Of a DNA stretch of 64,000 bases, positions 5,324 to 17,819 are shown piece after piece. A program made the position numbers and the translations under genes. The stretch spans positions 154,183 to 218,182 of the forward strand of contig JBLWGC010000194.1 of assembly GCA_048772705.1 (NCBI GenBank), read 5' to 3'. Source of the stretch: Leidyana gryllorum EB-2025a (taxonomy: Eukaryota > Protista > Apicomplexa). Below the pieces are notes generated by a model. The model worked only from the letters and a program-made list of their open reading frames with translations. It was not told where the DNA came from and searched no databases. Every line of letters begins with the position of its first letter. Position 1 is the first letter of the stretch.

Positions 5324-8300
5324 ATGGATTTACCTCCACCAACTGGAGAGGATACACCAGCGTACTTCAACAAACCATATTACCTGAACCTCTTCGAAGC
5401 GCCTCTGCGTGCAGTGGCCGAACGATATGCAATTCTTTGGACATCTCAAGAAGTTGAATGGCTGAAATCCTATTTCACACTTTTGAGCCAACCCTCTCAA
5501 CAATTGTTCGCCCGCCTATGTGGCCGAAAATCGGGTCCTATATTCAATGTCAATAAGCTCATCGACAATTATGCTAAAGATCAAAAAGGTCTTGAACCCG
5601 ATGAGGCCCGCCACGCTGTCATGGCAGCTGTCAATGAGCTCGTCTTCACCGGCTTCGGAAGAGATATCGTCTCTCAAGCCGATATTGGCGATCAACACCT
5701 CGGTGGGCATCCCGCAACCTCACTCATCCCCAAATCCCTTCCCCCACTCGTGTGCAGAATTCCTCAAGAAGCTATCGGCTCCACAGATCAAGAAGGTTAT
5801 GTCATCAAGCCGTATCCCCGACGCGAAAGACAGAGTCAAAAAATACAAGACGAGAGCTGAACAACTCCGTTGGCTGTCCGAGGTGACTAATCCGAGTATG
5901 TCTATGGGGACGAAATGTAGACCACTTCCCCTTGTCCGCTGCAGAATCGAAGATTGGCGATCAGAAATCCATTTTCAGCAAATATAGCCTTCGGGATCTG
6001 GTCTGGCAGGCTATATTCGCCGAACTCTTAAATTCTGACGCCGACTCCTCCTCCTCCTCGCCAGCCACCGTCCACTACGTCTGCATCGACGAACGGGCCA
6101 GACACTTTTTCCGTCGGCTCCACTTACTGCATAACCTCACCAGCGGGCCAGGCCTTGAGAGTGGTACGCACGTTCTCTGCCCCCCTTCATTTTGACCCTC
6201 TGATGATCAACAGATAAAGCCACCGAGGATGAGTGTACCAACTCTATCATGGCTAAGGTCTTCGTGCCGAGCGTACTCACCTTTTTAGGAAGTCACGAGC
6301 ACTTCTCGGCGTCGAAGGCGGGCTTGTTGGCTGTTGAACCTTTGTTCGCAGGTGAGCTCCGCAAGCATTTCTCAACTGAGCAACGCAGCCAGATAGAGAG
6401 GAGTTGGAGGCGTATGAGACAGCACTCGGAGCTGCAGCTCGCGTCCAGGCTCTCGCGATGAACCGGGTGAGTCTGCAACCGGTGTCTCACGTCTGCAGAG
6501 GTGGTATTTCAGATCAAAGCGAGTCCAAATGCGACATCGAGTATAGCTGGCTCGCTGGTTTCGCGGCTACTCACTCATATCGAGCGCTTAAAAGAGCCGT
6601 TGTGGGGAGAGTCGTGGGTCCTCAAACCTTCAGACCTCAGAGAAAAGTACAACATGGCTTGGAATGTGGTCGTCCAGTCCGACGTCGCCACGTCGAACAT
6701 GTCGTCATACTGCATCAACTTGGGATCGGATGATGAGGAAGGCGCAACGATCCCAACTCCGGATGTGATGCCAACCGGCGACGACGGGTCGAGCTACGCT
6801 TCTCTTCTATTCGCGTCAGGACGTAGCGTTACGTCGTCTGCTAAATGGATCTCTCCGCTCAGCAAATTGTGTCACGCTACTCAACGTCGGTTCAGTGCGG
6901 TATGAGCAGTCTCCATAACTCAGTGTCGACTCAGCCCTTCCGCTTTCATAGGAATATCTCTACTCTTTGGCCTTATACGACTTGGCGCAATTGCTGGAGT
7001 ATCAGAAAGCCCATCAGAAGGCGGTGGTGTGTCTGGAAGCTTTGATCGTCGCGGGTGTCTCCCGCGCGAACCGAGGGAAAGCCTTTTGTAGATTGCTGGT
7101 GGACTACCGGAGACATTTGAACAATCCTTCGAAAGCACTCGAATGGGGGCGAGCGGGCCTCGATGAAAGTACGTGCAGCAGCACCGCCAGCAACGGGAAG
7201 AGTTAATCGATTTTCCCACCTCAGTTGCCTTCTTCGGTCCCGGTACGGCTATTGAGCTGGCGAAGAAGGTATGGGATTTGGTCAGTTTTTTAGCTCGCCA
7301 AGCCGCTCCCAAGTCTCGCACACGAGGGATGAAACATAGAATCTCGCTCACTGAAGTGGTCGACCTCGACACTCCTCCCAACAAGTCAGCGTCTGTTAGC
7401 GAGGAAGTCGAGTTCCGACCCACGGGATTCTATCGCATATTCATTCCGGGTGACGACATGAGTGTGGATCATCTCTGTCGGATGAGCGGCAACGAGAAAC
7501 TCACCCGTCTTATCATTGAGGGGTCTTTCCTGACCCCCAGAGAAGCTCGTCGAGTGCTCGAGCTGCTGGTGGTTGGTGACAAGGCGGAAGAGAGTGTGCC
7601 CCGACGAGTCTTTACAGCCCTCAGAGGTCAACGCGATCTGGAGATGCCCAAAGACGAAGCTGACGGAACTCTATTGTCACATGGTTTCCGTCCAGCTAGC
7701 AGCTCTAAGCCTTCCACAAAACCGTTTTCACGCCCGACATTCGCTTACGAGGGCCAAGAGCTCTCCGTCGAGCAGTATGCCCTCATTCGATACATCCGAG
7801 GAGACGCTGCGGAGGTGTTTACGGGTGGCAGTGCAGCCAAGAAACGGTCGTCAAGGATCACGACTCCACGCAGTCAAGTCGCGAGCCAAAGTGCTGAGAT
7901 CGATGCGACAGGCGGACCGGCAACGAAAAGACGGAAGGTTTCGGCCAAGAAAATGAAGGAAGAGCTCTCAATGGCTCCCGTCAAAGAGGAGAAAGTCGAG
8001 CTGTCGAGTCGAAGCTCAGTTGGTGCTCTGAACAATAGGCCGGCGGTGTCCACCGATGTGAAAGCCGAGACCAACTTGCACCCCTCAACACCCACTCGGC
8101 GTCCTCGGAGTGGAAGCCAAGAGGTCGTTGAGATGCACACTCCGTCCCGTCATGCGTCACCGGCTGCTTTAACCCCGATCTACCACACGCCTACTCCAGG
8201 TTCCAATCGGAGACACCGGCGGTACGTTGACGAGAGTGATGAATGGGTTGGGAGTCACTGCGAAGGCTCTCTGCTTCGGGAGATCTTCTCGGTACTCTGT

Positions 8301-9508
8301 TTCCCTATAATGTTCCACCCAAGTTGCGCCGAGGCCAACCACAAGGCTTTCTTTTCTGACAATCAAACTGGTCCCAGTGACTTCTTCACGGGTGACTCAT
8401 TCTTTGAAATGCGACAACGCCCTATTGAGGCATATATAACGTCGCTCAGCGAGCTCTCCGCCACTGAGCTGACAGCATTGACCGCTTGGGCCTCTTCTCA
8501 TCTGTACGAGATCCGTCTGTGTGGCAGTCGATGGCGCGCTGAGGACTCGGTAGATGCAGCCTTCCAGCCGTTTGCCCACTTCAATCCGCTGCTGACAGCG
8601 ATCAATCTGATGGGAGACGGCGTGCAGGAAGTGATTATTTCGAGTCCGCCTGGATCGGTCAGAAAAACGCCTCAATCTAAATGGGACTCCGGGAGTGGCA
8701 AGAGGGCTTATTCTCACTACAACCGGTGGAAACCGCCTCCGAAAGACATCGAGACGCCATTGGACTGCGTTCTCGGCTACCGTCGGGCAATCCGTCTGAG
8801 CCCAGAAGAGTTTCGAATGGGACGGAAGATGAACAACCTGCAGGCGGCCACCACTCTCGCTGCTAAACAGCGCACCCGATCAGGACTAATGTATGGGCTG
8901 GAACTGGGATGGCTGGCGAGTTGTTTGAAGGCAGCTAAACTCGCTCAGATATTCTACACCTTCCTGAGACATTGGTGTCACTGGTGCTCGGGGCTTCCGG
9001 ACTTGTTTATTTGGACTAATCTACGGATGAGCAGTGTGATGGCCAAAGCGTTGACATTGGAGAGAAAGGGTATCGATTGCGATGTGTCTTTCGAGTTTCT
9101 CGCCCTCGTCTTCGCTTTCATTCGAAACGACCCATCATACCTCTCAGAGCGGGTCCGACAGCATTTCGAGGCAGGGGTGATCCCAGAATACGATGGATAC
9201 AGAGCTCGGCTGCAAAAAGCGTTGGCGGCAGCACGTGTTCGACCACGAGTAGACGAGGTATTCATTCGTGACATTGCTGAAGAAGTTGGGGTTGCACTCG
9301 ATCTGGCCTCCTGCCTCCCCCATGAAACTGCCCACTGCAAGTTGATCGAGGTCAAGGGCCCCGGTGATACTCTGTCCGAAAAGCAACGGTAAGTGGACTT
9401 CTTTTGCCTCACACATTTCCTGCTTTTAACAACAGCTTATGGTTGTTCTCTATGGTCCAGGCTCAAATGGAAGCCGAAGTGGGTGTGGTGGACCTCGTCA
9501 GTGGGTGA
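5324..9508 (+). CDS. FAN1: Fanconi-associated nuclease 1 (VRR-NUC nuclease), no UBZ domain seen
   Basis: N-terminal PYYLxxF..QQLFARLxxRK, SAP-like LSAPQIKKV, SVEQYAL, HCEGS, and catalytic GLPDLFIW...LIEVKGPGDTLSEKQR|LWL. Multi-exon; stop TGA 9506-9508. Confidence 0.9.
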
Positions 9509-10611
9509 TCGTCAAGAGTAGTGAGAAGAATAGTGACAGCGAGAAGATAGATAGTGTCAAGGGATGAGACGCGCCACAATAGTCGAGTGGCCGCGCCAAC
9601 TGATCAAACTTCCCGCAACTCGAGGCGCACGTCCGTCCAGCTGCTGTCATACACCACTCGCACTGATCATCGTTCCGACAGGCTTTGCACTGAGAATGTT
9701 TGGTGCATTCATCATCCTCGAGATATCGATAGTCATATCCGTCGGTGGGAGTTGACGCGAAAACTTGTTTGCTCCAGACAAATCTCGTACCAAAGAAACG
9801 AGACAGATCTGGGATGAATGTCTCGGTTCTTCGGTCGTAGAGACACGCGTTGGGTCCCACGGACCACGCCTCTATGTCTTCGCCGATGGTTATATACCGC
9901 ATGTTGGTTAGCCGATCGCTGCTTCGGATCATCTCTCCTCGATACCCGGCGGTGATATTGATACTGAAGAATACATCGTCTTCGACCAACGCGTTCTTTC
10001 CGCTGGTGGCCGGGGTTCCGCGGTTGTATGACCAGTCCTTCTTGTGGGCACACTGGTTGGTGACTTGCACCAGCAGTGTTTGAGGGTTGCACACGTCTGG
10101 GAAACGGGTTGGATCATGCATCCGATAAAGGACGTGGACCTCGTCGAGCTGTATCTGCGTATCTGTGAATCCATCCCATTGGACCGGAATAGTGAGCGCG
10201 AAGATGTATAAGCCCTCCCATCCCTGTCTATGATAGTGGAAAGCCACCTTGTTGCACGCCGTCGAACCCTATCTGATGAGAGAGGCGCTGGCAGAGAAGA
10301 GTCAGTCGCCGCCTGGGAGTTACCTGGTCAGTTTGACCTCGCAGCCGCGCCGTGCAGCCCGGGGGAAGTTGCGCAAGACAAGGGACGCTCGGATTTTGGT
10401 AGGGATCGTAGGGGCGAGGGTACAAACCCACCCCCTGGCAGTGTTCAACACATGCGGTTTGACAGGACGTCCTTGCGTCAAGAGAGCAGTCGATATCGGT
10501 GACAGAGGAGTTTGTGAAGAGAATCTGGTTCGAGTAGAGGGGTAGAAAGCGCTGGGAGGAGGAGGAATGTACTGCGAATGGGAAGGTGCAGAATAACGAT
10601 TTCCACTTCAT
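9498..10611 (-). CDS. Secreted, Cys-rich surface protein with a PSI-like module and a hydrophobic C-terminal tail (possible GPI or tail anchor)
   Basis: Signal-peptide-like MKWKSLFCTFPFAVHSSS. A predicted intron at 10323-10269 joins two ORFs. CTKHSQCKACRNDDQCEWC...C has PSI-type spacing. The C-terminus is LTLSIFSLSLFFSLLLTITH. Confidence 0.65.
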
Positions 10612-12149
10612 CCTCCGATGTGGTCGATTAAAACAGTAGCACGGGTTTCGTGCCTCAGGAAACAAGAAACAAAAAAGGCGGCTAGGTATACGGACCCCCA
10701 GATCAGCGGGTAGTGGCCTAAATTAGTGTCATCGATCGCAATGCTACCGACAAATGTAGTTATCAATGTTGCGATGGCGTTGATTGTGCTGAACAGGGCC
10801 AAAGCCGATCCGCGATGACTGGTGGGGTAGATTTCCGAAGAGTAAAGATAGACACAGTTCCATGTGGGCCCTGCGAGGAAATAAGTTACTATGGCGAAGG
10901 CGAAAACCAAGCCAGTTCGCTCAGGATCGACCAGAAGGGTGATCGCCATGCTAAAGAGACCGATGGCGCAAACCAAGAGGCATAAGCGAAGAGAATTAAT
11001 ACGGCCTCCGAGCCACTTGTTGTCCCATTGCATCTGTAGATACGTGATGACCATGCCCGGCAATTGAACCGCAAACACGGTGAGAGTGGTGGTGTTGCTG
11101 GCCAGGCCAGCATATTTGAAGAAAGTGGTCATGTAGGTGGTGGCACCATAGTAGCAGAAAGCTAAAAGGCCCCAAACCAGCATCAACATGACCGTATTGT
11201 ATCTGTACCCTGGTGTTTTAGCGACTTTGATCATTCTGACAAAGTTGGTGAAAACCTCTTGGTTCCATTGTTTGCTGGGCACGTCATTCGATGGCATCCC
11301 CTCGAGTCGATGCACCCTCCCTTCCTCTTTCCCTCCTAATTGCTGTTCGAGACCCACGGAACCTCCGCTGGTCAGCTTGCCCAAGCTTGACCAAGCTTTC
11401 GCCTCATCGCCTCTTCCAATGTAGAAGCGGGGAGTCTCCACCCAAGTGCAAGCCAGGATGATCAGAGGCACTATGCAGGGCATGAGACCACAAAGGTAGA
11501 GATACCGCCAAGAACGTGCGAACTTGACCGTGCTCGATTCAGTCAATCCTATGTTGACAGCCGTCACGTACATTATTGCCAATACGTGAAAGATCTGAAG
11601 GATGGTGGACGGGAGCGCTCGTCGCTTAGTCGTCGAAACTTCTAAAACGTAGATGGTAATCGCTGACGGCAGCGCCGAAACACTGAAAGCGGTCAGAGCT
11701 CTCGAGAAAACATATACTCCAAAGTTCCAGCTCAACGCAGACAGCAACGTGCCCATCGTCTCAAGAATCAAACATCCGAAAATCAGAGTCCGCCGTCCGT
11801 AAATGTCGAGACTTGGTATTAGGGTCAATGAGCCCAGCAGTCGGGCGATCGCACTCGATGCAAATACCCAATTATATACGGTTTTACGGGTCTCAAGTTG
11901 TGGCCAGAGCTCCCATACGGCAGCTGTGCTCAGGGTCGGCATAAAGTTCTGCTGCATGAAAGAGCCGTACGCGAACGCGCCCATCATAAACAGTGCCACC
12001 TGCTTTCGGTGCGTCCCAATCAGCTTGAGCAGCTCTTCTATGTTCCAATACTTGACATCAACGGGCGAGTTGTTCTCCAAATCTACCGAAGCGCCATCGC
12101 TATATCGCCGTGTAACCGGCAGCTCTTCTACTCGTGCGTCGACGGTCAT
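10608..12149 (-). CDS. MFS transporter (SV2/SVOP/organic-cation-like), copy 1, intronless
   Basis: 513 aa, about 12 hydrophobic segments, motifs DIYGRR, ETPRF, YSSEIYPTSHRGSA and ETR. Confidence 0.9.
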   Translation of the reverse strand: MTVDARVEELPVTRRYSDGASVDLENNSPVDVKYWNIEELLKLIGTHRKQVALFMMGAFAYGSFMQQNFMPTLSTAAVWELWPQLETRKTVYNWVFASSAIARLLGSLTLIPSLDIYGRRTLIFGCLILETMGTLLSALSWNFGVYVFSRALTAFSVSALPSAITIYVLEVSTTKRRALPSTILQIFHVLAIMYVTAVNIGLTESSTVKFARSWRYLYLCGLMPCIVPLIILACTWVETPRFYIGRGDEAKAWSSLGKLTSGGSVGLEQQLGGKEEGRVHRLEGMPSNDVPSKQWNQEVFTNFVRMIKVAKTPGYRYNTVMLMLVWGLLAFCYYGATTYMTTFFKYAGLASNTTTLTVFAVQLPGMVITYLQMQWDNKWLGGRINSLRLCLLVCAIGLFSMAITLLVDPERTGLVFAFAIVTYFLAGPTWNCVYLYSSEIYPTSHRGSALALFSTINAIATLITTFVGSIAIDDTNLGHYPLIWGSVYLAAFFVSCFLRHETRATVLIDHIGG

Positions 12150-12179
12150 TTTTTTGTACAGCTTGGTTAAAATAATGCA

Positions 12180-13688
12180 TTAAAGCGTATCCACAAGCGG
12201 CCGACCTCGGGTTTCGTGCTTAAGGGTCAGGCAAACGCCCAGTGACAGACCGTAGAAAAGGGACCAGCTCAAAGGATAGAGCCAAATGTTGGGGAGTGCC
12301 ACCAAATAAGATCCCAGGAAACTAGTGATGAAAGCGCAGCAAGCTGTGATGGTACTCAGTATTGCCAAAGCTGCGCCCCGGTGGCTTGTTGGGAAGATCT
12401 CAGTGCTATAGATGTATAGTGTATTCCACATTCCCCCTGCGAAAAAGAAGGTAGTCAGCACTATACTCCATATTTCCACGGTATTCCGGCCTCCCACCCA
12501 TAGCAGCCCGCCAAGTGACAGCTGACCAACACAACAGAACGCAGATGTGGTGCGCAGCGTTATGATGCGGCCTGCATAGGCCCACTCCATTAGACGGTAC
12601 GAGACCAGTAATCCAGGAATTTGGACGGCGAATACGGCAAGTGTAGCCCAGTTTCCGAGGAGATCGAGTCGTGCGAAGAATGCAGTGATGTATGTGACTG
12701 ATCCCCAGTATCCGATCGCTGTCAGTGCCCACAAAGTTCCCAGCTTGATTATGTGCATCCGGTATTGTTCATGGCCAACTACTTCGCGAACCGCAACTCC
12801 AGTATGTCGGAGATGATCCAACATCTTTCCGAGTATGCTGGGAGGTGACAAGTCCGGCTGGCCACCACAAGGGGAGATCTCGCCGGAAACTTGAGAGGAT
12901 GACGAGCTGCAAAGCTCAACGTCGTGCGGCGAGGACCCCCCTAACCAATGGAACAATCCTTTTTCCCCGCCTGGGCACAACCGTATCAGACTGTTCCAGG
13001 CGGCTTTGGTGTTTCCCTGACTCAAGTGAAAACGAGGAGTCTCGATCCACGTCATTAGAAGAAATATGATAGCAAGTGTAGCTGGCAGCAGCCCGCAGAG
13101 CTGGAGTATGCGCCAAGACGGTATGTCAAAGGGTAAAGACACAGAGGTGAGGATCTGGTTGGCGCCAGACAGATACATTATGGCCAATAATTGAGCTATT
13201 TGAAGCAGTGTTGGGGGCAAGGCACGCTTTGAGGCTGCCACCACCTCCAGAACGAAGATGGTGGACGTGGAGGGCAGAGCTGCAACTATCAGCACTGACA
13301 GAGCGCGAGCCGCCACATAGAATTCAAATGTTGGCGCCAGAACACTCAGAGCGGTGGTGAAGAATTGAGCCATTAGGCAGAAGGCGATCAGGGGACGTCG
13401 TCCTATCACGTCCTGAGCTGGAATAATGAGTAGAGACCCTAACAAACGAGCTACGTAACCCGACGCGAAAACGATGTTATAGTACGTTCTCCTCCCTTCC
13501 AACTCCGGCCAAGCAGCCCACATGGACGCCGTACTCATCGTGGGTAAGAAGACTTGTTCCATGAAAGATGCGGCGGCACAGGCTGCCATCAGAACCAGGT
13601 AGACCTGCTGTCGGTGAGTGCCGATAGCTCGCAGTACATCCTCGATGGAAACAGGGGCACGGCGTACCTCAACAACAACGGTCTCCAT
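12180..13688 (-). CDS. MFS transporter (SV2-like), copy 2, intronless
   Basis: 502 aa with DVIGRR, ETPRF, YSTEIFPTSHRGAA and ETRG; colinear with copy 1. Confidence 0.9.
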   Translation of the reverse strand: METVVVEVRRAPVSIEDVLRAIGTHRQQVYLVLMAACAAASFMEQVFLPTMSTASMWAAWPELEGRRTYYNIVFASGYVARLLGSLLIIPAQDVIGRRPLIAFCLMAQFFTTALSVLAPTFEFYVAARALSVLIVAALPSTSTIFVLEVVAASKRALPPTLLQIAQLLAIMYLSGANQILTSVSLPFDIPSWRILQLCGLLPATLAIIFLLMTWIETPRFHLSQGNTKAAWNSLIRLCPGGEKGLFHWLGGSSPHDVELCSSSSSQVSGEISPCGGQPDLSPPSILGKMLDHLRHTGVAVREVVGHEQYRMHIIKLGTLWALTAIGYWGSVTYITAFFARLDLLGNWATLAVFAVQIPGLLVSYRLMEWAYAGRIITLRTTSAFCCVGQLSLGGLLWVGGRNTVEIWSIVLTTFFFAGGMWNTLYIYSTEIFPTSHRGAALAILSTITACCAFITSFLGSYLVALPNIWLYPLSWSLFYGLSLGVCLTLKHETRGRPLVDTL

Positions 13689-13705
13689 TTTGAGACCTGA
13701 CGTCC

Positions 13706-15239
13706 CTATTTTTCCGGCACTTCCCCATTGAGCTGATGGTCATCCAAACCCTTCTTGGACGTGTCTTCAGGAGGGATCCAGGAGCAGAGTGCTGTTATGA
13801 ACCTCAGCCCCCCCCAAATCAGCGGAAAGATCCAGGGCTTGTCCTCGTTCAGTGAGGCCGAACCAACATATGTCGTCACAACAACCGAAAGTGATGTAAC
13901 TGCACCAAAAACGCTCATAGCGCTTCCGCGGTGCATTGTCGGATAGGACTCGGCGCTGAACGCGTAGATCGCGCCCCAAATAGGCCCTCCGAAGAAGTAG
14001 CCCAACAGACTGATCGCGGTCAACCATCCTGGAGATCGCAACCAGCTATCCTCTGACGCCATTAAACTGAATGCCAATGTCAGTAGCGCTACGCCAGCAC
14101 CAACTGCTGCATATCGAATGGCCGGGAGTCGGCCGTGACGTTGCATGAACCAGTAGATCAAAACTTGTCCTGCGGGCACAGAGAAGAGTAGTCAAAGTGT
14201 TCGATGCAACGAGACACGCACGCAGCATATGCGTTACAGCAAACTCACCTGGCAGTTGAATGGCAAAACTTCCCGCAGTGGTCCAAGCGCGGTGGACCCC
14301 AATATAAGTGTAAAACAGAGTTAGATATGAAGACATTCCCCAGTGCGCAAAAGATTGAAGCGCTGTCAGAAGAATGACGCCAAGTGTGTTACGCCTATAC
14401 GACTTGGAGATAACAAATTTGCCCATATGGATAAAGTTATCCAACACCAAAGTGCACCAGCTTTTGTGTTTGCGATCACTAGGCACAAATCCTTCAAAAG
14501 TGTCGGGTATGGAGGAGATGTCAAGCCTCTCCAGCAGCCCTTGTTCTCCTTTCGGACAGAGCTTGCACAGAATGCGCCAGGCTCCAGTAGGGTTTCCTTG
14601 GTTTGTCGCAACGAAGCGTGGGGTCTCGAGCCAGAGCCAGAGCATTCCCGCAATGGCAAAGAGGGTCGGGACTTGGACAACGCCGGCTGCCCAGCGCCAA
14701 GCATTTTCCAAACCCTTGGAGGACTCTAAGCCTTCGATCAAGAAGGTGGCATAGATTATGTAGAGAACGGCCACTGTCTGACACAGCATCGCCGGTAGCG
14801 CGCGTCGTCGGGTGAAGACCATCTCCAAGGAGTATATGGTGGCAGCCGATGGGAGGACCGAGGTGAGGCCGAGGACAGCGCAGCGGAGGACGACGTAGAC
14901 CGGATAATTCGGCGCGAAGGCGGAAGCCACGCCCATGACAGTCGATAGACACAAGCAGGAGACAATGAAAGGCCTTCTGCCGATAATGTCGATCCACGGT
15001 AAGAGGAATAAAGATCCTGCCAGGCGTGCAAAGGCACCAAGGGCAAAGACCAAGTTGTAGGTATATCGATCATCTGCCAACCAGTCCCAGTCTTCCAGCA
15101 TAGATGTGGTACTCAGAGTCGCTAGCATTGATTGCATGCTGAAATGGGCATAGGTCAGCGCGCTGACTATCATAATGACTGCTTGATACTTGTGGGTGCC
15201 TATCGCGGCCAAGACTCCCTCCATTGAGAAGCTTGTCAT
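13706..15239 (-). CDS. MFS transporter (SV2-like), copy 3, one intron
   Basis: ATG 15239 (MTSFSMEGVLAAIGTHKYQ aligns with SIEDVLRAIGTHRQQ of copy 2). DIIGRR, ETPRF and AESYPTMHRGSA. A 79-nt GT-AG intron at 14248-14170 joins the two ORFs. Confidence 0.88.
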
Positions 15240-15241
15240 GA

Positions 15242-16585
15242 CTAAAAATTGGTCCTCTTTTTGTGGCGGGGACGCCCGTATTCCCACCGAGTGCTCACTG
15301 TAGACCCCTCTGATGACGAATTATCCGATACGATTCCAGCCAGTAGAGATTTGCGTCGGTTCATATCTCTTCGCCGAGCCGTGCGGGCCGCCGCCATCTC
15401 GTGCTGAGGCTTTTGATCTGTCGGTGGTGGAAGAGGTGGTGGTCTACGGGCAGATTGGCGAGCTGTACGCCGCGCAGTTCTAAATCCTGTCTCTTGCTGT
15501 CGTTTGCTCCGTCTCCGATGCAGCGACGGCGGCGGTGGCGGACAGGGTGTGAAGTGAGCTCCCTCCATCGGCAACCGTCGAACTCGGGAAGTTTTTGGTT
15601 GATACTGCATGTTGACAGACGATTTCAGAATAGATCCACCGCCCATAGGACTTCCTGACTCAACGGGCTTTTGCGGCTTCTTCTTGGTGATTGGCGGTAC
15701 CGGTCTGGCGTCCGGGACGCCAGGCAGCGACGATCTCCTCTTCCGTATGACCGGCGACTCTTTTCCACCCGACGAGCCCGCCTCCGCTGGCATCTGGACA
15801 ATGGAAAGACGACGCGCGAACGGTCCCGCCGAGGCTTTACTCGCCTCAGCTTGTCCCCCACTCTGTCTTTCACTCGGTGGTTCGGCGAAGCGTCCACGGG
15901 TCATCGCAGGGGTCATTGTAGTTGTTCGAGAGGGGACGGGGAGATCAAGCGGCTTTGCACCTCCGCCTTGCTGCCGCGTGCTGGGAGTCGCTGACCGCCG
16001 CAGGATCGCCGGCGGGGGAGTGGCATCACGAATTCTTCGAACGGGTGTTAGGGCTCGAGGCTTTGGTGGGAGTGCCGGTGGCGCTTTGTGAGCTTTGTGC
16101 ATGATGAAAGTCGAATCGTCCACAAAACGAGGCGTCTGCTCATCTTCAAATAGCCGAAATGTGGGTGTGTACGCCGTTGTGTGACGGGTTGGTGTTGGTG
16201 AGAGTAGGGGGGTGGTGAGGAGCATTGCAGCTGCTGGTTGTGGCGTGAGATGGAATTTTGCGTCTTGCGAGAGCTGGTCGGGGTGGCTAAGGGCTGCTGT
16301 ATCAGCGGACACAATGCTCGAGTTGTCCAGCGAACGCGAGATGACCTCAATCTCCCAGGGATCAATTAGGGCGCTTGGATGCGAGCAAATGTCTTTGCAG
16401 TCTTCGAACGCCTGTGTTGCCTTTGGGCAGTGTCGCCGACAACACGAGGGTGTGGCCTCCCATTCATGTTCGACCGCCAATCGGCGTAGCGGAATCCTCG
16501 GGGCTCCGTGGATGGCTTCCTGCCTGATGAGAGGCAGCAGATCACTGGAGAGCCGGAAGTCCTGGCGCCCACGGACCTTGAACAT
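15242..16585 (-). CDS. Hypothetical Pro/Arg/Ser-rich, largely disordered basic protein
   Basis: 447-codon ORF filling the space between MFS copy 3 and GPN2. It has a Cys cluster (CCRRHC..C..C) near the N-terminus and polyPro and RRxS motifs. Exact start uncertain (16585 or 16596). Confidence 0.65.
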   Translation of the reverse strand: MFKVRGRQDFRLSSDLLPLIRQEAIHGAPRIPLRRLAVEHEWEATPSCCRRHCPKATQAFEDCKDICSHPSALIDPWEIEVISRSLDNSSIVSADTAALSHPDQLSQDAKFHLTPQPAAAMLLTTPLLSPTPTRHTTAYTPTFRLFEDEQTPRFVDDSTFIMHKAHKAPPALPPKPRALTPVRRIRDATPPPAILRRSATPSTRQQGGGAKPLDLPVPSRTTTMTPAMTRGRFAEPPSERQSGGQAEASKASAGPFARRLSIVQMPAEAGSSGGKESPVIRKRRSSLPGVPDARPVPPITKKKPQKPVESGSPMGGGSILKSSVNMQYQPKTSRVRRLPMEGAHFTPCPPPPPSLHRRRSKRQQETGFRTARRTARQSARRPPPLPPPTDQKPQHEMAAARTARRRDMNRRKSLLAGIVSDNSSSEGSTVSTRWEYGRPRHKKRTNF

Positions 16586-16622
16586 ACCCGCACCATCTCA
16601 GTGAAAGGTGCAAAAATTTCTA
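16586..16622. promoter_or_regulatory. Candidate minimal bidirectional promoter/initiator (CAAAAATTT)
   Basis: 37-nt interval between divergent ATGs containing caaaaattt at 16611-16619; similar motifs recur at other gene starts. Confidence 0.4.
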
Positions 16623-17819
16623 ATGCCTGTTGACTATGGTCAATTGGTGGTGGGCCCCCCTGGCAGCGGGAAGAGTACTTACTGTCAGGGCATGCACCAA
16701 CTCCTGTCTGCTCTGAAACGCCCGCATTTACTCATAAATCTCGATTTCGCGAACGAGTTCCACCAATCAACGAACAACGAACTCCCACAATTCGATCCTC
16801 CAGATGTTGACATTCGAGACCTAATAACTGTTGAACAAGTTATGAGAGAACATAATTTGGGGCCCAACGGCTCCCTGATATATTGTAACAAGTTCTTGCG
16901 TCAGCACGTCCAATGGCTCAAAGACAAAATCAAAGAAGCTAAAAGGGCACGAGGCTATAAGCACTCTTACCTTCTCTTTGATATGCCGGGACAGGTCGAA
17001 TTGTACACTCACGACGAGTCCATTCACCATATCATCAAGGAACTTAGCGATAGAGACAAAGCAATCCGGGTAAGGAAGAGTACTTACTCACTCACACATA
17101 GCAAATACTTCTCTCAGCTGGCCGCTGTGCATCTCATCGATGCCAACTTATGCACTCAGCCTCATCAATATTTCTCAAGTCTTTTAGTCTCTCTCTCAGC
17201 TCAGATAGGCCTGGAACTGCCTTTTGTTAATTGCTTCACAAAGATCGATCTGCTGGAGCAGGACGGTGATCATCTCAGTGAGTCTCACACGACCGCTACC
17301 TTCTCTCTCAAATTTGGCCCTTCAGAATTCCCCTTAGAGTACTATGCGAGAGCCGAGGATCTCCAATACATGGTGCCTCACGCGCACCCACCACTTGAAA
17401 AAGGCAAGCAGACCAAGGAACATCTCTTTGCACAATTCCACTCGGAGATTTGCGACATAGTTGAGAGTTACAAGTGAGATACAAACACTCCTTCCTCCAC
17501 ACATTAATTGCCGCCCCACTGCAGCTTGGTATCCTTCATTCCGCTCAATATACAAGACAAACAGAGCACCATGGCGGTCCTGGCTCAAGTCGATCAAGCA
17601 AACGGATTTGCAATGTCAGCGTACCTGCCACCACATTTACGGTTGCCTGGTGAATCGGATAACGCTGAACTACGCCTCCCAGTGAAGAACTATCTCAAAG
17701 CATTCGGTTCGGAGTGGTTCGATGGAATTGAATTTGACCGAGACGGGACACCCACACTCGACGACATAAATGAAGCACACGCACAACAACAGCAAGACGA
17801 GCAGCAACAGTCAACCTGA
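16623..17819 (+). CDS. GPN2: GPN-loop GTPase 2
   Basis: GQLVVGPPGSGKSTYC, LGPNGSL (GPN loop), FDMPGQVELYTH, TKIDL and YNLVSFIPLNIQD. Introns 17070-17117, 17278-17325 and 17474-17524. GPPGSGK and GQVEL favour GPN2 over GPN3. Confidence 0.88.

Follow-up and report, generated by a model that had tools for sequence, protein, structure and literature searches.

Five tightly packed co-directional genes in the gregarine Leidyana gryllorum, and a case for one minimal promoter per gene with overlapping mRNAs

In the genome of the gregarine Leidyana gryllorum EB-2025a, we analysed a stretch of 64,000 nucleotides (nt), hereafter the window (GenBank assembly GCA_048772705.1, contig JBLWGC010000194.1, positions 154,183 to 218,182 of the forward strand), in which five protein-coding genes follow each other between 16585 and 9498 with stop-to-ATG distances of 2, 17, 30 and -4 nt, as read from the sequence and the list of open reading frames (ORFs). 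Coordinates are positions in the window, and all genes of the array lie on its minus strand. In order of transcription, the array comprises a gene for a basic protein (gene 1), three genes for transporters of the major facilitator superfamily (MFS; genes 2 to 4, here first, second and third MFS, the first being 15239..13706) and a gene for a secreted Cys-rich protein (gene 5). A preliminary description of this DNA, in which the numbering of the MFS genes runs in the opposite direction, had reported the five co-directional genes and their distances, and both are confirmed by the sequence, by the ORF list and by conservation in a related gregarine. Real and evolutionarily conserved, the array illustrates well how extreme the packing of genes can be in a gregarine; its genes lie much closer together than those of ordinary eukaryotes, but by the standard of its own genome this is not exceptional. 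Concerning its expression, we consider it probable, although by no means certain, that the genes each have their own minimal promoter and give rise to overlapping mRNAs, and that they do not form an operon-like unit.

The five orthologues were found in unchanged order on a contig of another gregarine species (L006, Logan run ERR10900114), where the spacing is 2, 18, 33 and -4 nt and all four junction ATG positions are retained. In the comparison with L006, all seven exons show identities of 0.63-0.93 at codon positions 1 and 2 and of 0.30-0.49 at position 3, and because of this coding-type conservation in every exon we take all five genes to be real. Synonymous third positions are only about 0.43 identical, so that neutral sites are close to saturation. 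Gene 1 aligns over its C-terminal 269 codons with 57% amino acid identity (position identities 0.66/0.71/0.33), genes 3 and 4 are 71% and 81% identical to their orthologues (P0009 and P0001, respectively), and gene 5 is 58% identical in exon 1, which is conserved from residue 17 on, and 83% identical in exon 2. The intron of gene 2 is supported by the observation that its two exons align to residues 13-376 and 373-478 of the second MFS, a split that recurs in L006, and the intron of gene 5 by the conservation in L006 of its donor, its acceptor and the six Cys of exon 1. The array is thus not a set of bacterial-type, intron-free genes, as GT-AG introns are present in genes 2 and 5 and in the adjacent FAN1-like gene; this agrees with the earlier assignment of the array to intron-bearing nuclear DNA.

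The positions of the start codons are equally constrained. A conserved N-terminal motif, (E/D)VL.AIGTH, starts 8-40 residues past the ATG of each MFS gene, and in the second and third MFS it lies upstream of the second in-frame ATG. The sole alternative ATG of the first MFS, five codons downstream, would widen the gap from 2 to 17 nt. Exon 1 of gene 5 contains a single in-frame ATG, and its signal-peptide-like N-terminus begins at the ATGA in both species, the overlap of genes 4 and 5 being present in L006 at 5597-5600. Given the motif near the MFS starts and the single ATG in gene 5 exon 1, later starts would widen the gaps by at most 15 nt. An annotation artefact, in which gaps of ordinary size are hidden by start codons set too far upstream or by ORFs that are no genes, could draw on the second ATG of the first MFS and on the poorly conserved N-terminus of the Cys-rich protein; against the coding-type conservation of all exons, the four junction ATGs kept in L006, the placement of the MFS motif and the conserved first exon of gene 5, we regard it as extremely improbable.

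The assembly comprises 15.5 Mb in 237 contigs, and a sample of 198 kb (the window plus 134 kb of pieces, L010-L024) was used for the statistics on packing and on start-proximal sequences. In this sample, 24 of 68 same-strand neighbouring long ORFs are at most 60 nt apart, three of them with a -4 overlap, a count to be read as an upper bound because some pairs are exons of one gene. Divergent ATG-to-ATG spacers of 26-87 nt occur as well. The non-tandem neighbours of the array are just as squeezed, with an overlap of 11 nt between the coding ends of gene 5 and the convergent FAN1-like gene and with 37 nt between gene 1 and the divergent GPN2 gene. Very short spacers are therefore found in all orientations, including overlapping coding ends, as in genomes of the compacted type, and the array is representative of a very tight packing specific to the lineage and is not a special unit. 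The orthologous MFS gene of Gregarina niphandrodes (L028) has flanking spacers of about 470 and 500 nt; from these wide spacers it follows that the squeeze arose within gregarines, a point that is open to comparative study.

Start codons in the sample are associated with a short A/T tract, which we scored as a run of at least five A or T (A5+/T5+) within -45..-1 of the first ATG of long ORFs. Such a tract precedes 21 of 73 ORF starts (29%), compared with 3.4% of ORF-interior windows and 4.6% of the starts of 546 spurious short ORFs, which were selected by an identical rule (binomial p ~3e-14 with respect to the ORF-interior rate). A/T runs of at least 5 make up 0.4% of ORF-interior bases versus 7% of the bases at -20..-11, where they peak, and the most enriched 5-mers are TTTTT, AAAAA, AAAAT/ATTTT and AAATT. 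The coding strand carries A-runs in 10 cases and T-runs in 12, a strand symmetry that points to an element acting at the DNA level rather than to an RNA leader. At starts with at least 200 nt of free upstream sequence, the runs remain concentrated within 60 nt of the ATG, and the AT content is flat (0.50-0.54). After stop codons with the next gene more than 60 nt away, a tract was found in only 1 of 44 cases, and because of this rarity we assign the tracts to starts. Their frequency is equal at tight tandem starts (6/18) and at close divergent starts (4/12); as close divergent genes must have their own promoters, the same rate at tandem starts disfavours a polycistron. The A5+/T5+ tract is, in short, a conserved start-proximal signal of the kind present in compacted genomes.

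Within the array, a tract precedes four of the five genes (p ~6e-6 versus background), and all of these tracts are kept in L006. Among internal genes the count is three of four, which we use as a sequence proxy for promoters before internal genes, the function of the tract being putative. The junction between genes 1 and 2, including CCAATTTTTAGTCATGAC, is identical in L006 from about -19 to +6 around the ATG. The spacer between genes 2 and 3 is identical at 16 of 17 positions, with one inserted base in L006, against a synonymous identity of about 0.43 (binomial p ~1e-5), and in the spacer between genes 3 and 4 the A run and ATATTT are retained and the remainder has diverged. Over the final 15 codons of the upstream genes, synonymous identity is 0.54 versus 0.42, an excess that is not significant (p 0.17). 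Tracts also precede the MFS orthologue in the gregarines represented by L007, L008 and L027 and in Gregarina niphandrodes, where their greater distance from the ATG is what one would expect of a looser genome.

Taken together, these results lead us to propose that each gene of the array would be transcribed from its own minimal promoter. Of this promoter only the A/T tract would be recognisable, a short run that is symmetric with respect to strand (A5+ or T5+, in many cases AAATTTTT-like), ends 0-40 nt before the ATG and falls either within the spacer or within the final codons of the preceding gene. With the tract ending so close to the ATG, the 5' untranslated regions (UTRs) would have to be very short. 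The preliminary description argued, correctly, that the gaps are too small for an ordinary 3' UTR, a poly(A) site and an RNA polymerase II (Pol II) promoter; since the spacers leave no space for a 3' UTR, each mRNA would end inside the next gene or read through it, and the mRNA of gene 5 would end antisense inside FAN1. The mRNAs would consequently overlap, and every ORF would occupy the first position on an mRNA of its own and be translated from there. The role of the tract as a promoter or start-site element is our inference from the sequence, and so are the positions of transcript starts and ends. Ends of transcripts within neighbouring coding sequence appear unavoidable at this locus, given the 11-nt overlap of gene 5 with FAN1 and the 37 nt between gene 1 and GPN2. 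Squeezed convergent and divergent pairs are not explicable by polycistrony, which favours embedded signals. The preliminary description had left the choice between a polycistron and promoters and terminators embedded in neighbouring genes; the A/T tract and the squeezed pairs speak for the latter, and the label of candidate polycistron finds no support as the leading interpretation. Most likely, the array is a further case of a known class, that of compacted eukaryotic genomes with overlapping transcription.

A true polycistron would have a single promoter upstream of gene 1 and an RNA of about 7 kb carrying all five ORFs, the downstream ones being expressed by termination-reinitiation, by internal entry or after cleavage into single-gene mRNAs. 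Five co-directional genes with such short gaps, and with their spacing retained in L006, are what this explanation predicts; the ATGA and 2-nt junctions have the geometry of coupled termination-reinitiation, and polycistronic RNAs of 2-4 genes, not trans-spliced and coexisting with single-gene RNAs, have been reported in Cryptosporidium parvum (bioRxiv 10.1101/2025.01.17.633476). We nevertheless hold it to be unlikely, since the internal genes bear the same start-proximal tract as divergent, necessarily self-promoted genes, and since convergent and divergent pairs are equally packed. Reinitiation would be needed after ORFs of 447-513 codons, after which it is very inefficient in eukaryotes, and leaky scanning would have to pass all of the 15-31 AUG triplets that each of these ORFs contains. 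A TGGGA pentamer, as in viral reinitiation elements, does precede the ATG of the first MFS by 47 nt in both species (15286-15290, minus strand; L006:880-884); it was rejected as a general reinitiation signal, because it occurs at one of the four junctions, on conserved Trp-Glu codons, with a background of 0.18 per 100 nt. Being old paralogues (37-45% identity), the three MFS genes have no obvious need for a dosage coupled to that of the flanking genes. Resolution by trans-splicing also lacks a counterpart in the genome: the dinoflagellate/perkinsid leader consensus, the only leader type searched for, has no match at up to 3 mismatches in the 15.5 Mb, and spliced leaders are not known in Apicomplexa. 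The specific form in which one polycistronic nuclear mRNA serves all five genes by termination-reinitiation at the ATGA and 2-nt junctions seems to us distinctly unlikely.

In a mixed case, most genes would have their own start, and the third MFS and the Cys-rich gene would be expressed from a bicistronic RNA, maybe beside single-gene RNAs. This is a possible but minority explanation. It would account for the Cys-rich gene alone having no A5+/T5+ tract within 45 nt of its ATG and for the conserved ATGA overlap, and polycistronic reads coexist with internal monocistronic ones in C. parvum. The missing tract says little, however, as about 70% of ordinary starts are also without one, and TTTTAAT at -22..-16 and T6 at -65..-60 (the Phe codons TTT TTT), the only A/T runs before the Cys-rich ATG, are both conserved in L006.

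The reading we prefer, one minimal promoter per gene, has to be weighed against several observations, beginning with the tractless gene 5 just described. With a tract at no more than about 30% of starts, the promoter must comprise more than this element, and the statistics come from ORF proxies in 198 kb and not from curated gene models, several of the "tight tandem pairs" being exon pairs. The A/T tracts could be a feature of spacers used for 3'-end formation, or could serve both functions. The sister lineage, Cryptosporidium, is the very one in which polycistronic RNAs made without trans-splicing have been reported (bioRxiv 10.1101/2025.01.17.633476). RNA-seq contigs of a locust gregarine do not decide the matter. 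Contig L009 begins 32 nt before the ATG of the MFS orthologue, about 35 nt past an A5 tract, and contig L008 extends from the MFS orthologue over a 74-nt spacer into a thioesterase-like gene upstream of it; both readings fit, because short-read contigs cannot separate bicistronic from overlapping RNAs. The runs behind these contigs, SRR5171257 and SRR5171258, are listed as transcriptome data in a study in which RNA from locust midgut and fat body was sequenced (PMC7643970).

Comparison with known systems helps to place the array. In the compacted genomes of microsporidia and nucleomorphs, transcripts reportedly start in upstream genes or end in downstream ones, and 5' UTRs are very short (PMC3629993). 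The array resembles those of Encephalitozoon cuniculi and Antonospora locustae and of cryptophyte and chlorarachniophyte nucleomorphs in that its spacers are too short for UTRs and signals. In E. cuniculi, short AT-rich or CCC-like motifs adjoin the start codons. The differences are a genome of 15.5 Mb as opposed to 0.5-3 Mb, ordinary GT-AG introns of 47-79 nt and a place among the apicomplexan gregarines, and the overlapping transcripts are here predicted from sequence. Giardia, a protist with a gene-dense genome, has AT-rich initiator promoters directly upstream of the ATG and near-leaderless mRNAs; the short AT-rich element and very short 5' UTRs are alike, the lineage is unrelated, and an initiator role of the tract would be putative here. 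The operons of kinetoplastids, nematodes and dinoflagellates, which depend on spliced leaders, are alike in their co-directional runs with short spacers and unlike in that no leader of the dinoflagellate/perkinsid type was found here and that L009 is collinear with L008 to its first base. Cryptosporidium parvum, of the sister lineage and the nearest organism with data, likewise has co-directional neighbours and no spliced leader. Its accessible chromatin lies mainly at the 5' end of the units, with few internal regions, and a poly-T motif occurs in the open-chromatin peaks (bioRxiv 10.1101/2025.01.17.633476). The units of C. parvum were defined by long reads; the present array is defined by sequence, has five genes, and shows a common start-proximal tract at its internal genes.

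The features of the array and of its borders are collected in the table. The neighbouring genes are eukaryotic (FAN1, GPN2, STT3, CSE1 and NMD3). GPN2 was identified by a match to Pfam PF03029 (1.2e-48), and an ORF at 17508-17819 on the plus strand is compatible with its last exon and has no Pfam match. Spliced genes were searched exon by exon, and FAN1 was translated across its intron to read the phase: removal of a 47-nt GT-AG intron (9389..9435) brings the VRR-NUC sequence back into frame, and the upstream exons match Pfam FAN1_HTH and VRR_NUC. No Pfam family was found for gene 1, and neither a homologue search beyond Pfam nor an Atlas search brought a usable match. For gene 5, Pfam, a homologue search and an Atlas search returned no family, no homologue elsewhere and no usable match, and a single-sequence AlphaFold model was unusable (predicted local distance difference test, pLDDT, 36); its earlier label as a PSI-like surface protein could not be substantiated.

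Table. Features of the five-gene array and its borders (positions in the window).
Feature	Position	Strand	Details
Gene 1, basic, Pro/Arg-rich protein, 447 amino acids	15242..16585	-	ORF; stop TAG 15244-15242; first of array
Gene 2, first MFS transporter	13706..15239	-	ATG at 15239; exon 1 15239..14249, 79-nt GT-AG intron 14248..14170, exon 2 14169..13706; stop 13708-13706; Pfam Sugar_tr/MFS_1 on both exons
Gene 3, second MFS transporter, 502 amino acids, single exon	12180..13688	-	ORF; Pfam Sugar_tr/MFS_1
Gene 4, third MFS transporter, 513 amino acids, single exon	10608..12149	-	Pfam Sugar_tr 8.9e-34; stop TGA 10610-10608
Gene 5, secreted Cys-rich protein with hydrophobic C-terminal tail	9498..10611	-	ATG 10611; N-terminus signal-peptide-like; exon 1 10611..10324, 55-nt GT-AG intron 10323..10269, exon 2 10268..9498; stop 9500-9498
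Divergent spacer, 37 nt, gene 1 ATG to GPN2 ATG	16586..16622		GPN2 ATG at 16623, + strand; contains AAATTTTT at 16619..16612
Gene 1/gene 2 spacer, 2 nt (TC)	15240..15241	-	between TAG of gene 1 and ATG of first MFS
Gene 2/gene 3 spacer, 17 nt	13689..13705	-	between stop TAG of first MFS and ATG of second MFS
Gene 3/gene 4 spacer, 30 nt	12150..12179	-	contains ATTATTTT and A6 run 12155..12150 adjoining ATG
Gene 4/gene 5 overlap, ATGA stop/start	10608..10611	-	sequence
Last exon of convergent FAN1-like gene	9436..9508	+	stop 9506-9508; overlaps coding end of gene 5 (9498..) by 11 nt
Gene 1 tract, AAATTTTT	16619..16612	-	in 37-nt divergent spacer; sequence
Gene 2 tracts, T5 and A5	15248..15244 and 15262..15258	-	in last codons of gene 1; A5 and AATTTTTAG
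Gene 3 tract, A5	13713..13709	-	adjoins stop TAG of first MFS; GAAAAATAG at end of first MFS

Other candidate signals were considered. A perfect 6-bp inverted repeat (arms GGTCTC and GAGACC, loop AAAATG; 13697..13680, minus strand) holds the ATG of the second MFS in its loop and is identical in L006. Hairpins around starts are not enriched, with 5 of 73 starts compared to 29 of 601 internal ATGs, and scans for bacterial-type promoters and terminators remained at shuffle level, with no Rfam family found. On the coding strand, TCAAT has 9 hits in the first 10 nt after stops versus about 1-2 per bin elsewhere in the 198-kb sample, and it could be a 3'-end signal. As a poly(A)-type signal it was not retained, because the excess is weak and the motif follows just one of the five array stops. 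In Gregarina niphandrodes (L028:3660-6900, KK211726.1), a motif like (CACGTG)TGTGCAAG lies at most 100 nt upstream of at least three annotated genes and is a possible promoter motif of that species.

The closest named relatives of the MFS proteins are those of Gregarina sp. transcriptomes (EukProt; 41-42% identity to gene 4), of the locust-gut gregarine and of Gregarina niphandrodes, from which the genome is that of a gregarine distinct from G. niphandrodes. An exact look-up of the second MFS protein of the window in public contigs gave no match, and a metagenome scan returned one short contig only, which was uninformative. A 25.6-kb gregarine-like contig (L027:1-12158, Logan SRR31860986) carries eleven co-directional called genes with gaps of 16, 47, 1, -4 nt and so on, and a T6 or T8 tract stands directly before several of their ATGs, once within the upstream coding end. 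In a further gregarine (L026:3239-6595, Logan ERR10900105), two tandem MFS paralogues are 66 nt apart, and single MFS copies are present at the loci seen in L007 and Gregarina niphandrodes; the MFS family appears to have been duplicated in several lineages. Within the L. gryllorum assembly, the pieces L010, L021, L023 and L024, from the starts of contigs C194, C2, C3 and C4, contain no ORF of at least 150 amino acids, unlike the gene-dense window, so that the 15.5 Mb include non-coding or repeat-rich contig ends and small contigs.

Among the large branches of Apicomplexa, gregarines have been studied least. A literature search found no paper on how gregarine genes are transcribed, and extreme packing with overlapping transcription appears to be undescribed for gregarines in the literature searched. 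In L. gryllorum, a genome of 15.5 Mb with ordinary introns packs nuclear genes as tightly as those of microsporidia and nucleomorphs, down to shared letters of stop and start codons. Should the array be a polycistron after all, the finding in Cryptosporidium would be ancestral and more extreme in gregarines, and, if reinitiation were involved, operon-like expression would be a regular mode among gregarines, and what was reported for Cryptosporidium would then also apply to longer units. If instead a minimal promoter has the A/T tract at its core, as we favour, the tract would provide a simple handle for locating gene starts and for understanding how little DNA a Pol II gene needs.

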